Below are positions 5,348-57,200 of a stretch of 64,000 nt of DNA, piece after piece. How positions within the stretch are numbered: the stretch's first letter is position 1; every line of letters begins with the position of its first letter. The notes below the pieces were generated by a model. The model searched no databases, was not told the DNA's origin, and saw only the letters and a program-made list of their open reading frames with translations. The translations under genes and the position numbers were made by a program. The stretch comes from Hypanus sabinus (lineage: Eukaryota). The DNA lies in the NCBI RefSeq assembly GCF_030144855.1, contig NC_082715.1, forward strand, positions 86,800,001 through 86,864,000, in the 5' to 3' direction.

Positions 5348-5967
5348 ATGCCTGGTGGTTGGAAGATCTCCACATGCTCCATGGAGTTCGTAATAATTTT
5401 AATATGTATATTTATTTCTTCCCCCTAATAACCAATTGTTTCATCTTAAAAGCATCTATATATTTAATCCTATCTTTTGTAAATAAGGGCTCCAAATTTT
5501 CAAAAATGTTTCATATTTATCTCTTAAATTATAAGTAATTTTTTCTAATGGAATACAACCATAGATTTCTTTCTTCCAAGAATCTATACTTAAATGTGAA
5601 TCCGATTTCCAAGTAACTGCAATAGCTTTTTTGGCTACTGCCAGTGCAATTTTTATAAATTCTTTCTGATACTTATTTAGTTTGAGTTTCGGTTTTATCC
5701 CTTCAATATCACCTAGTAAAAATAATATTGGATTATGAGGAAATTGTGTTCCTGTAATTTGTTCCAGTAAAAGTCTTAAATTTGTCCAAAAAGGTTGAAT
5801 TTTAGAGCAAGACCATGTCGAATGTAAAAAAGTACCAGTTTCCTGGTTACATCGGAAACACTGATCCGATAAATTTGGATTAAATTTTTTTATTTTTTGT
5901 GGTGTAATATATAATTGATGTAGAAAATTATACTGCACTAATCTTAACCGAACATTTATTGTATTTG
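5183..5967 (-). mobile_element. Young 5'-truncated L1-clade insertion
   Basis: Open ORF2 C-terminus (LVQYNFLHQLYITP, CFRCNQETGTFLHSTWSC); (TTTC)n 3'UTR; AATAAA at 5215-5220 (minus); pure 24-nt poly(A) at 5183-5206. Confidence 0.92.
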
Positions 5968-6122
5968 ACTTCCAAATGGGAAGACCACAATCTGTGTGGA
6001 TCCGAAGTAACACCTCCACCTTACTGACAATAAACATTGTTACACCTCAGGGGTGCTTAACCCACTGTTCTACTCTCTCTACACCTATGACCATGTGGCT
6101 AGACACAGCTCAAATACCATCT

Positions 6123-45125: not shown

Positions 45126-46428
45126 AAAACTCCAGAAAGAACTTTTTGGATACCAGCAAAGTCCAAAGACTGTACATATAATGAAACACTCACTGGTTTT
45201 TCCTTGCTTATATGAAGAGAGAGCTGCAACAGTAGCTAACAGGCAGCATACAGGCACCGTTCCATGAGTTCACTAACATGGGGAGATAAAATCTAGCAAT
45301 AACTCTAGAAGATGTAGGAACAGAAACAGACCATTTAGACCATCAAGATTGCTCCACCATTCATTCAGGCTGATTTGTATTTCCCTCCCATCCCCTTTCT
45401 CCTGCCCTGGAGTCTTAGAGTCATAGATCACTACAACACAGAACCTGACCCTTCAGCCTATTTAGTCTGCACCGAAATGTTGTACTGCCAGAACTTGCTG
45501 ATGACAAAAAACAAAGAACCTAGAAGAGGATTTGAACTCCGGGCAAGCTCTGGATTCGCTGATGATGGGATGCTGAACACGACTCCGTAAACTCTGCTCT
45601 CACCAATTTGCTTAATGTACATCAAGGCCCACTCCCCCTGCCGTCAAATGTGGAGCAGAGGCTTAGAATCCAGATTGTCCTCTAATTCCTCCATTTCCCT
45701 GTCCCTAAACCATAACCTGATCACTGTCTCCCCTCCCTATCTACAAAACCATCCCTACAGACCTAAAAAACAACCAAGTATGAGCCACGGCTTTGAGAGA
45801 AACCGCAACTCTGAGCCATCTTTAAAAAAAAATGTGTTAAGCTCTCACCTCATTTATCAGAGTCAGGATCAGTTTCAATATCACTGACTTATATTGTGAC
45901 ATCTGGTGTTTTGCGGCAGTAGTGCATTGCAATTCATAATAATAAAAACTATAAATTACCATAAATATATATAATTATATCAATTGTGCAAAAGGAGAGG
46001 GAGAAATGCTGAGGTATTGTTAATAGGTTCATTGTTCATTCAGAAATCTGATGGCAGAGGGGAAGAAGCTCGTGCTGAAATGTTGAGTGTGTATCTTCAG
46101 GCTCCTGTACAGGGAGCAATGAGAAGAGAACATGTCCTGGATGATGGGAGTTCCCTTTGAGCCATCAGCTTTTAAAAGTGAACTGGATGCTGAGGAGGCT
46201 AGAGCTCATGATGGAGCTTTTTCTATTACTATGCAGTGGCCCCTCCGTACCAATTGATCATGCAAACAGTTAGAATGTTCTCCACAATACATATGTTGAT
46301 ATTTGTGAATGTCTTTGGTAACGTTAATTGTCCTCAAACTCCTAATGAAGTGAAGCTGCAGTCCTGCCTTCTTTGTAATTGCACCAATATGTTGGGCCCA
46401 GGATTGATCCTCAAGGATGTTAACGCAC

Positions 46429-47183
46429 AAGAACCTGAAATTGTTGGCTAAGCGCCTGTTTCCGGGTTCGGTGGAGAGTTGGGGCTGCTCACCGCCTCCT
46501 TACCTCCGAGAAGCGGCGAGCCCATGCCGGCGTCATCCTCGGGCCGAGTCCCGCTGCACGATCCGCAGAGCTCCGGACGCTTTTGCTACCAGGTTATTAA
46601 CTTCTTCGGAAAAAGAAAATGGGAGGGGTTGAAAGGCTAAATATTCCAATATCACAGCCAAGCTCTGGCACTCCCAAGCAAAACCAGCACCTGAACAATA
46701 ACTGGCATAAGGGCAAGGACAACAATCTCAGCCACATGAAGTTGGCATACAAGAAGGCCCATGAACGATGCATCTCTGAGACCTGTCAGACTATGCAAAA
46801 GGATGCAAAAATGGTTATGCACTTTACTGCAAGTAATCAGAGCTGGGAAACTATTCTGAGCACTTCTAATACACTACTACAATCACAGTGTGACCAAAAT
46901 TATGCTGGAGCCAAGTTTAGTGAGCCACCATCTCCAAGTGTATTACCCAAACCTCCGAGCCACTGGGTACATCTTCCCCTGGAGCCTTCTGACCACAGTG
47001 ACATGGCCTTCCAGTTGAAGACCTTACTTAAAGTGCAAGCATAGTCTGTAGCTTAAATAGGGCAGGTTCAAACAGAACTGGAAGCTTTGTTCTGTCATTC
47101 AATGCAGTTTTCAACCATTGCCTTTAATTACCCATTTAAGGTGGATATTTGCTTAGTGTATTAAAAAAAAAGAACCTGAAATT
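46429..47183 (+). other. PNRC2: Processed PNRC2 mRNA insertion (5'UTR+CDS+short 3'UTR+A-tail) with 14-bp TSD
   Basis: AAGAACCTGAAATT at 46429-46442 and 47170-47183; A9 at 47163-47171; a minus-strand Rex LINE is split exactly at the duplication. Confidence 0.92.
46619..47044 (+). CDS. PNRC2: Proline-rich nuclear receptor coactivator 2 (retrocopy, intact 141-aa ORF)
   Basis: Starts MGGVERLNIP and ends NYAGAKFSEPPSPSVLPKPPSHW...FQLKTLLKVQA, matching the PNRC2 N-terminus and the PNRC C-terminal domain (YAG motif, SEPPSPS, LKTLL NR box). Strong Kozak context gaaaATGg, no stops or frameshifts. Confidence 0.96.
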   Translation: MGGVERLNIPISQPSSGTPKQNQHLNNNWHKGKDNNLSHMKLAYKKAHERCISETCQTMQKDAKMVMHFTASNQSWETILSTSNTLLQSQCDQNYAGAKFSEPPSPSVLPKPPSHWVHLPLEPSDHSDMAFQLKTLLKVQA

Positions 47184-47400
47184 TTTCATCCCTTCCAGCT
47201 CCGATCCTCAACAAGGACTCATGGGTGGTCCCTTGACTTCCCTTTCTGAATTCCACAATAAATTCCCTGGTCTTACTGACACTGAGTGTTGTTGCTGTGA
47301 CACTACTCAACCAGCTGATCTATCTTCCTCCTCTATGCCTCCTTGTTACCATCTGAAATTCTGCCAATAATATTTGTGTCATTGGCAAATTTATAGATGG

Positions 47401-54204: not shown

Positions 54205-57200
54205 TGCAGCTCCATAGCGACCGCGTTAGGGAATTGAAGTTGCAGCTCGACGACCTTCATCTGGACAGGGAAAGTGAGGTGGTGATAGAGAGAAGATATG
54301 GGCAGGTAGTTACACCAGGGCCTCAGGGGACAGGTAAGTGGGTAACAGTCAGGAGAGGGAAGGGCAAGAGACAGATCCTAGAGAGTAACCCTGTGGCTGT
54401 TCCCTTTAAAAATAAGTAATCCTGTTTGAGTATTGCTGGGGGGTGGGGGTGGGTCAGCCTACTTGGGGGAAACAACAGTGGCTGCGCCTCTGGCACAGAG
54501 TCTGGCCCTGTGGGTCAGAAGGGTAGGGAAAGGAAGAGGATGGCAGCAGTAATAAGGGACTCTATAGTTAGGGGGTCAGACAGGCGATTCTGTGGATGCA
54601 GGAATGAAACACGGATGATAGTTTGCGTCCTGGGTGCTGGGGTCCAAGTTGTTTCTGAGCACGTCCATGATATCCTAGAATGGAAAGCCAGAGGTGGTGG
54701 TACGTATTAGTTCCAACAACATGGGTAGGAAAAGGGAGGAGGTCCTGAAAATAGATTACAGGGAGTTAGGAAGGAAGTTGAGAAGTGAAACCTCAAAGGT
54801 AGTAATCTCAGAATTACTGCCTGTGCCAATGTGACAATGAGTATAGGAATAGAATGAGGTGGAGGATAAATGTATGACTGAGGAATTGGAGCAGTGGGTA
54901 GGGATTCAGATTTCTGGATCACTAGAACCTCTTTTGGGGCAGGTGTGACCTGTACAAAAAGGACGGGTTGCATTTGAATCCCAGGAGACCAATATACAGG
55001 CAGGGAAGTTTGCTATGGCTATTGGGGAGAGAATAAACTAGAATTGTTGGTGGGTGGGAACTGAACAGAAGAGACAGCGGAAGAGACAGTTGGCTTACAA
55101 ATAGAGAAAGCTTGGAGACAGTGCGAGATGGAGGATAGGCAGATGATAGGGAAAGGACGCGCTCAGACCGATGATTTGAGATGTGTCTATTTCAATGCAA
55201 GAAGCATCATGAACAAAGTGGAAAATCTGATAGCATGGATCAATACTTGGAGCTATGATGTTGTGGCCATTACAGAGAATGAAATGGCTCAGGGTCAGGA
55301 ATGGCTACTTCAAGTGCCAGGCTTTAGATGGTTCAGAAAGGACAGGGAGGGATGCAAAATAGGTGGGGGCATGGCACTGTTGATCAGAGATGCTGTCATG
55401 GCTGCAGAAAAGGAGAAAGTCAAGGACTGATTGTCTACAGAGACATTGTGGGTGGAAGTTAGAAACAGGAAGGTGGCAATAACTCTACTGTGTGTTTTTT
55501 ATAGACCTTGCAATAGCAACAGGAACATCGAAGGGCAGATAGGTAGACAGATTCTGCAAAAATGTAATAATAACAGGATTGTCCTGGTGGAAGATTTTAA
55601 TTTCCCAAATATTAATTGGCATCTCCCGAGAGTGAGGGGTTTAGATGGGGTGGATTTTCTTTGGTGTGTTCAGGAAGGTTTCTTGACACAATATGTTGAT
55701 AAGCCTACAAGAGGAGCGGCTGTACTTGATCTGGTATTGGGAAATGAACCTAGTAAGGTGTCAGATCTCTCAGTGGGAGAGCATTTTGGAGATGGTGCTA
55801 ACAATTCTGTCTTCTTTACCATAGCATTGGAGAGGGATAGGAACAGACAGGTTAGGAAAGCATTTAATTGGAGTAAGGGGAAATATGAAGCTATCATGCT
55901 TGGAAGCATAAATTGGGAACAGATGTTCTCAGAGAAATATACGGAAGAAATGCGACAAATGTTAGAGGATATTTGCCTGGAGTTCTGCAAAGGTACAGTC
56001 TAATGAGACATGGAAAGGATGGTAGGATACAAGAAATGTGGTGTACAAAGTCTATTGTAAATCTAGTCAAGAAGAAAAGAAAAGCTTATGAAAGGTTCAA
56101 AAAACTAAGTAATGATATGGATCCAGAAGGTTTTAAGGCTAGTAGGAAAGAGCTTAAGAATGAAATTAGGAGAGCCAGAAGGGGCCATGAGAAGGCCCTG
56201 GTGGACAGGATTAAGGAACACCCAAGGCATTCTACAAATATGTGAAGAGCAAGAGGATAAGACGTGAGCGAATAGGACCAATCAAGTGTGACAGTGGAAA
56301 AGTGTGTATGGAACCGGCGAAGATAGCAGAAGTACTTAATGAATACTTTGCTTCAGTATTCACTACAGAAAAGGATGTTGGCGATTGTAGGGATGACTTA
56401 CAATGGGCTGAAAAGCTTGAGCATTTAAACATTAAGAAAAAGGATGTGCTGGAGCTTTTGGAAAGCATCAAAGTTGGTCACTGGGACCAAACAAAATGTA
56501 CCCTAGGCTACTGTGGGAGGTGAGGGAGGAAACTGCTGAGCCTCTGGCGATGATCTTTGCATCATCAAAGGGGATTTGAGAGGTTCCAGAGGATTTGAGA
56601 TTTGCAGATGTAGTTCGCAAATTTAAGAAAGGGAGTAGGGATAGCCCAAGAAATTATAGACCAGTGAGTCTTACTTCAGTGGTTGTTAAGTTGTGGAAAA
56701 GTTCCTTAGAGGCAGGATTTATGAAAATTTGGAAAGGAATAATATGATTAGGAAGAGTCAGCATGGCTTTGTGAAAGACAGGTCATGCCTTACAAGCCTG
56801 TTTGAATTTTTTGAGGATGTGACTAATCACATTAATGAAGGAACAGCAGTAGATGTAGTGTATATGGATTTCAGCAAGGCATTTGACAAGGTACCCCATG
56901 CAAGGCTTATTGAGAAAGTAAGGAGGCATGGGATCCAAGGATACATTGCTTTGTAGATCCAGAGCTGACTTGCCCACAGAAGGCAAAGAGTGGTTATAGA
57001 TGGGTCATATTCTGCATGGAGGTCAGTCACCAGTGGGGGACCTCAGGGATCTGTTCTGGGACCTTTCTGGTTCGTCAGTTTTGTAAATGACCTGGATGAA
57101 GTAGGATTGTTTAGCAAACTTGCTGATGACAGAAAGGTTGGGGGTGCTGTGCATAGTGTGGAGGGCTGTCAGAGGTCACAGCGGGACAGTGATAGGAATA

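Follow-up and report, generated by a model that had tools for sequence, protein, structure and literature searches.

Evidence for a recent processed PNRC2 retrocopy with an intact open reading frame in a degenerate LINE of the stingray Hypanus sabinus

Here, we describe a 727-bp insertion in a 64,000-nucleotide stretch of the genome of the Atlantic stingray, Hypanus sabinus (NCBI RefSeq assembly GCF_030144855.1, contig NC_082715.1, positions 86,800,001 to 86,864,000 of the forward strand; hereafter the window, whose coordinates are used throughout) that is very likely a processed retrocopy of PNRC2, made by target-primed reverse transcription and probably recent, with its open reading frame (ORF) intact. 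In the course of events that we propose, a spliced PNRC2 mRNA of the stingray lineage would have been reverse-transcribed where a degenerate minus-strand LINE had received a staggered nick; with the T-rich bottom strand at AAGAA as the primer on an A-tract, this would have left a 727-bp insertion with a 14-bp duplication. The part copied in this way would comprise some 150 nt of exon 1 with its junction to exon 2, a conserved upstream ORF (uORF), the full 141-aa coding sequence (CDS) and no more than the first 118 nt of the 3'UTR. The copy is an ordinary case of a known and common type of event, one of thousands, though an unusually clean one: the Vertebrate Genomes Project's cartilaginous-fish genomes hold 14,081 retrocopies, of which 95.7% are species-specific and 15.7% have an ORF (bioRxiv 10.64898/2026.06.26.734816). 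Its protein is already in public databases (NCBI, UniRef, nr). What it offers is a clean cartilaginous-fish retroposition in which all hallmarks can be seen, from splice junction, duplication and A-tract to a LINE that is restored and a synteny that is lost, and it suggests that poly(A)-dependent retroposition has recently been at work in stingrays. If the copy is expressed, or has replaced its parent, a cofactor of decapping and nonsense-mediated decay would have been moved, together with its bicistronic uORF, to a new regulatory setting.

The insert occupies 46443-47169, the 727 bp that lie between two exact copies of the 14-bp direct repeat AAGAACCTGAAATT, at 46429..46442 and 47170..47183 on the plus strand, and the initial annotation, which had described a perfect duplication around an insert of this size, was exact to the base. 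With one mismatch tolerated, only these two matches to AAGAACCTGAAATT were found in the 64-kb window, against a chance expectation of 0.08 matches from shuffled sequence, and two matches occurred in 0 of 100 shuffles. The 5' copy of the target-site duplication begins with the A-rich AAGAA, and the 3' copy stands directly after the A-run. Such an A-rich start is expected if the primer that pairs with poly(A) is the T-rich end of a nicked bottom strand. The A-run in which the insert had been said to end comprises 7 A (47163..47169), or 9 if the first two bases of the duplication are included, and may be what is left either of a poly(A) tail or of an A-rich site inside the mRNA at which priming took place.

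All parts of the insert lie on the plus strand. The leader (46443-46618), which had been called GC-rich, totals 176 nt at a G+C fraction of 0.60; it consists of a segment from non-coding PNRC2 exon 1 (46443..46592, GC 0.66), which terminates in ...CCAG at the former splice donor, and a short 5'UTR segment of the coding exon (46593..46618). A uORF of 38 aa (MPAS..., 46524..46640) spans the splice junction between the two segments and runs into the main ORF. The PNRC2 CDS, 141 aa plus stop and unbroken, is at 46619..47044, recognized by Pfam, homologues, motifs and PDB matches, and is followed by a shortened 3'UTR (47045..47162) that is homologous to the first part of the batoid PNRC2 3'UTR. Both the uninterrupted 141-aa PNRC2 frame and the approximately 118-nt 3'UTR that had been proposed from the letters agree with these coordinates, the latter measuring exactly 118 nt.

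The insert splits a minus-strand LINE whose halves rejoin at the duplication, as the initial annotation held. The 3' part of this host LINE (45647..46442, minus strand) is degenerate and consists of the 3'UTR and the C-terminal portion of ORF2, whose stop is at 46206-46208. The upstream part (47184..47396, minus strand) has frameshifts and stops, and it becomes continuous with the other half when the insert is taken out. After removal of the insert and one copy of the duplication, the minus-strand LINE frame reads ...GSELEGMK|NFRFLCVNILEDQSW... without a break, and an alignment of the rejoined flanks to two paralogous LINE copies within the window (7115-6706 and 19681-18988, 68-72% identity) passes over the junction collinearly. 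The empty site thus appears to be recoverable by joining the flanks with one duplication copy. The host fragment as a whole is 5'-truncated and frameshifted, and it lacks the RT domain; its recognition as a LINE is generic, by an ORF2 C-terminal motif (FKFLGV..DLSW-like), a weak match to PF09004 (E 0.014) and unnamed Atlas clusters. The Rex1/Babar family named in the initial annotation is a putative label for it. Other LINE material is present in the window. A 193-aa ORF on the minus strand (5456-6037) has a Cys/His motif and matches zf-RVT (PF13966) at 26.2 bits, just below the cutoff of 27.5, and is a candidate remnant of an L1-type LINE, the kind able to retropose mRNAs. A 190-aa ORF on the plus strand (55431-56003) matches the LINE endonuclease family PF14529 at 28.1 bits (cutoff 27.4) and represents a further LINE fragment. 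Rfam models run on positions 30000-64000 gave no family at gathering score.

The PNRC2 CDS is a single exon in every species examined, and because it is naturally so, the intronless CDS of the insert proves nothing and the 5'UTR is needed for the test. The insert was compared with genomic PNRC2 loci of Chiloscyllium punctatum (L002), Callorhinchus milii (L003), Leucoraja erinacea (L004), Rhinoraja longicauda (L005) and Narcine bancroftii (L006), and with L001 (Logan SRR6291340), a spliced contig of a different batoid. In Chiloscyllium, Callorhinchus, Leucoraja and Narcine, homology to the insert starts only ~15-35 nt upstream of the ATG, and a polypyrimidine tract and CAG acceptor lie directly before the coding exon, at the place where the window has exon-1 sequence. 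Positions 46476-46592 of the leader match Narcine exon 1 (L006 2201-2338); this exon has CCAG as its last bases, with the donor GTCAGT next to them, and 7,639 bp separate it from the coding exon; Leucoraja has the same arrangement with an intron of ~10 kb. Since the leader corresponds to Narcine exon 1 joined to the coding exon, the window carries the exon1-exon2 junction, at 46592|46593, and the spliced contig L001 has an exon-exon junction identical to that of the window. By this comparison, the parental intron is absent at the exact exon-exon junction.

The surroundings of the copy also differ from those of canonical PNRC2. In all five genomic loci, a gene of 210-248 residues, identified as SRSF10 by the exon peptide FEDVRDAEDALHNLDRKW..., lies tail-to-tail with PNRC2 and 2.5-6.5 kb downstream of it, and conserved coding and non-coding blocks downstream of PNRC2 are common to four of the loci (Rhinoraja left out). 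Neither SRSF10 nor the blocks of the canonical locus were found in the window, which extends 46 kb upstream and 17 kb downstream of the copy and shares only the PNRC2 coding exon with them, and the annotation has no other gene within 10 kb of the ORF in either direction. The copy lies between genes in repeat-rich sequence, apart from the ancestral PNRC2-SRSF10 neighbourhood. Conserved synteny together with the lack of another PNRC2 locus had been named in the initial annotation as grounds against a retrocopy, and the SRSF10 neighbourhood of the canonical loci is missing here. A DNA-level duplicate, or the ancestral PNRC2 locus itself, with the flanking repeat and the A-run coincidental, would fit a CDS that is naturally in one exon, but is extremely improbable given a 5'UTR intron gone exactly at a conserved donor/acceptor junction, the lack of SRSF10 synteny, a 14-bp repeat that is unique in the window, and a LINE restored by removing the insert; on the same observations, an ancestral locus or a chance repeat was ruled out. 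The processed retrocopy, read earlier from the duplication and A-tail as a product of target-primed reverse transcription, is therefore also backed by the exon-exon junction, the lost synteny and the reconstructed empty site, and these give strong support to the earlier proposal of either a retrogene or a recent processed pseudogene with an intact ORF. The parts of that proposal that make it an extra and lineage-specific copy are more tentative.

At the 3' end, homology to the 3'UTRs of Narcine, Leucoraja and Rhinoraja extends to ~47160 and includes the invariant block TGCCTTTAATTACCC. Past this point the window has the A-run, and the Narcine and Leucoraja genomes continue with unrelated sequence that is not A-rich (the Rhinoraja stretch ends here). 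The copy's 3'UTR is shorter than the conserved 3'UTR of other batoids. Neither AATAAA nor ATTAAA occurs 10-35 nt before the A-run, and with no such upstream signal, the template would have ended at a non-canonical proximal site, or RT would have primed on an internal A-rich stretch of the 3'UTR. The last bases before the A-run, ATT, form with it an ATTAAA at 47160-47165, followed by a T-rich stretch, and this could act as a new polyadenylation signal. With AAGAA right after the A-run, the primer could well have been a nicked T-rich strand, as it is in L1-type insertion, and we infer that L1-type machinery made the copy. Like vertebrate LINE-mediated retrocopies in general, it combines intron loss at the exact junction, a 14-bp duplication with an A-rich start and a 3' A-tract with a new, non-syntenic place and insertion into another repeat; unlike them, it has a very short and pure tail (7-9 A) and a truncated 3'UTR that lacks an upstream polyadenylation signal of canonical type.

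The uORF, of 38 codons, starts with the ATG at 46524 and stops 19 nt beyond the main ATG, in another frame. The uORF start GCCCATGCCG (MPAS/MPTS) is conserved in 4 of 4 batoid sequences, namely the window, L001, Narcine and Leucoraja, and the uORF overlaps the main ATG in 3 of the 4 (in frame in Leucoraja). L001 has an arrangement identical to the window's (409-537, 42 codons), the Narcine uORF starts in exon 1 (L006, from ~2255) and has 39 codons after splicing, and that of Leucoraja (L004, ~10001) is in frame with the main ATG and is annotated as a 34-aa N-terminal extension. A conserved PNRC2 uORF with ribosome-profiling support has been described (Mudge et al., PMC3847767). The retrocopy thus took along the entire bicistronic unit, and the conservation of this upstream ATG (MPAS...) in exon 1 across four batoid sequences is useful for annotation. 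The Kozak context of the copy is likewise the same as in PNRC2 of other batoids.

Sequence further upstream did not travel with the mRNA. A block upstream of exon 1 is conserved at 70% identity between two batoid orders (L001 202-340 and L006 1875-2013), carries TGACGTCA, CRE and CCAAT-type motifs, and is probably the PNRC2 core promoter or part of a longer exon 1. The retrocopy begins just downstream of this CRE/CCAAT block, and the block itself was not copied. An ETS-like site in the leader has no conserved counterpart in either L001 or Narcine.

The description of the insertion as young was borne out in part. The two duplication copies show 0/14 differences, which limits their mutual divergence to <= ~0.19 per site (95%). 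The exon-1 leader has a CpG observed/expected ratio of 0.98 (16 CpG in 150 nt), compared with 0.85-0.90 in the exon 1 sequences of L001 and Narcine and 0.19 over the whole window, and a leader this rich in CpG in a CpG-depleted genome points either to very little time since insertion or to protection from methylation. The unmethylated 5' end of a functional retrogene would also keep its CpGs, and CpG retention alone is not proof of youth. For the coding sequence, dS is 0.52 between the window and L001, 0.51 between the window and Narcine and 0.58 between L001 and Narcine. L001 was considered as the parent and rejected, its dS to the window being as large as that between L001 and Narcine or between the window and Narcine; a dS of ~0.5 places it in another batoid order. 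An old retrogene dating from the batoid radiation was likewise rejected, as 14/14 identity at a divergence of ~0.5 per site has a probability of ~0.001. The comparison argues for an insertion that is recent relative to the divergence of the batoid orders. A young age is thus favoured by the perfect duplication and the undecayed CpG leader, both of them indirect, while a very young age is opposed by two deletions in the CDS (9 and 6 nt, described below) should they have arisen after insertion; in that case the copy would not be very young.

The identity of the ORF as PNRC2 was upheld by several comparisons. It matches the Pfam family PNRC (PF15365) at 28.6 bits (cutoff 21), its residues 93-123 match PDB 5kq1_C, its residues 1-122 match 4b6h_C, and a 5kq4 chain was also matched (human PNRC2). 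Its closest database relatives are cartilaginous-fish PNRC2 proteins, and in a protein tree the window sequence falls within the batoid clade (support 100/99) on a branch of length 0.16, compared with 0.16 for the canonical gene of Narcine. The PNRC2 motifs had been reported as retained, and the invariant family segment NYAGAKFSEPPSPSVLPKPPSHW and the C-terminal LKTLL box are indeed both present and unaltered in the ORF; all motifs known to mediate interactions, which are the proline-rich segment that binds Dcp1a/Dcp2 and the LKTLL box, are intact. The stretch KKxE(K/R)GHG, a conserved feature but not one that formally defines the family, is not intact. Two in-frame deletions of 9 nt and 6 nt in the copy's CDS fall in columns that are occupied in 96-99% of 125 vertebrate PNRC2 sequences; they take out K-K/G-E of this stretch (3 columns, 98-99% occupied among the 125 members) and two residues after RC, 5 near-universal residues in all, and the GHG reads AHE in the copy. 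There are also ~12 substitutions in the ORF at sites otherwise constant among cartilaginous fishes. The deletions and substitutions may be either traits of the stingray lineage or decay of the copy. Like canonical vertebrate PNRC2 (human 4B6H, 5KQ1/5KQ4), the copy encodes ~140 aa with an identical NYAGAKFSEPPSPSVLPKPPSHW and the LKTLL box at the C-terminus, and has a 5'UTR uORF overlapping the main start. It differs from canonical PNRC2 in having no 5'UTR intron and no SRSF10 neighbour, in lacking the 5 near-universal residues, and in the ~12 changes at constant sites, although the parent may share both the losses and the changes.

Pairwise dN/dS was 0.18-0.29. A maximum-likelihood branch model (F3x4, seven taxa, two topologies) gave an omega of 0.41-0.42 for the window branch and 0.245 for the background; the window branch was not different from the background (p 0.13-0.15) and was below 1 (p 0.014-0.017). 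Since this branch spans all the time from the batoid radiation onward, with the history of the sequence as the parent gene before insertion included, omega cannot tell whether the copy itself is constrained. We regard as the most likely present status, with about an even chance of being right, that of a young copy which has not had time to decay.

More tentatively, the copy may be an expressed and selectively kept retrogene beside an intron-containing parent, providing PNRC2 activity (stimulation of Dcp1a/Dcp2, UPF1-linked decay) in some tissue or stage, with the CpG-rich leader aiding the start of transcription and the ATTAAA at the A-run as the predicted polyadenylation signal. The ORF and the uORF are both intact and both deletions are multiples of three, as such a gene would show, but an ORF is kept by only some 16% of the retrocopies in cartilaginous fishes, and by a young copy it would be kept by default. 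The branch omega of 0.41 is significantly below 1 (p ~0.015), yet it spans the whole lineage since the split of the batoid orders, including the parent phase, and does not differ from the background. At the 5' end, the leader keeps its CpGs in a CpG-poor window, as would be expected of an unmethylated 5' end; on the other side, the CRE/CCAAT promoter block seen in L001 and Narcine was not imported, and the ETS-like site in the leader is absent from both. The ATTAAA at 47160-47165 with its following T-rich stretch is also in keeping with expression. The ORF is an annotated protein in NCBI, UniRef and nr, although annotation is no proof of expression, and these are the only sources of the exact protein, for which no transcript contig was found.

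A stronger proposal is that the retrocopy is an orphan, or replacement, retrogene, the PNRC2 gene beside SRSF10 having been lost or disabled in the stingray lineage so that the retrocopy is its sole working PNRC2. If this were true, an essential mRNA-decay cofactor and its conserved uORF would be expressed from a LINE-embedded, promoter-poor new locus. We consider replacement unlikely. It draws on the protein collection, in which the sole PNRC2 of GCA_030144855.1 is the window's own protein (all 589 word-sharing candidates scored; the collection is incomplete), and in which that protein forms a 90% cluster of one member from one contig, the next match being 79% identical and from another species; the annotated parent of a young copy should share its 90% cluster. 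Purifying selection along the lineage also fits. Against it, the collection has visible gaps: several annotated sharks and rays have no PNRC2 in it, SRSF10 of Narcine and Leucoraja was not among the matches, and a protein search for SRSF10 of this assembly, from the Narcine exon peptide, surfaced none in the same incomplete collection. The parent may be unannotated or unassembled, the skate locus lying near a chromosome end. Replacement of parents by retrogenes is rare (Ciomborowska et al. 2013; PMC3548309), and here it would be needed soon after a recent insertion. The copy resembles such orphan retrogenes in being an intact retrocopy that is the only family member for its genome in the protein collection; it differs from them in that the absence of a parent rests on an incomplete protein collection and not on genome sequence.

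Two further observations concern the canonical locus in skates. In both species (L004 and L005), the PNRC2-SRSF10 pair lies less than ~0.8 Mb from the end of a 33-Mb chromosome, a position that could make it hard to assemble in other species. In Rhinoraja, an insertion of ~385 bp (L005 10402-10787) interrupts the PNRC2 coding exon just before the AFQLKTLLKVQA codons; the annotation of this locus calls the insertion partly an intron, and the annotated protein is without the LKTLL end. It may be that a repeat has inserted here, that the assembly is faulty, or that the gene is truly disrupted.
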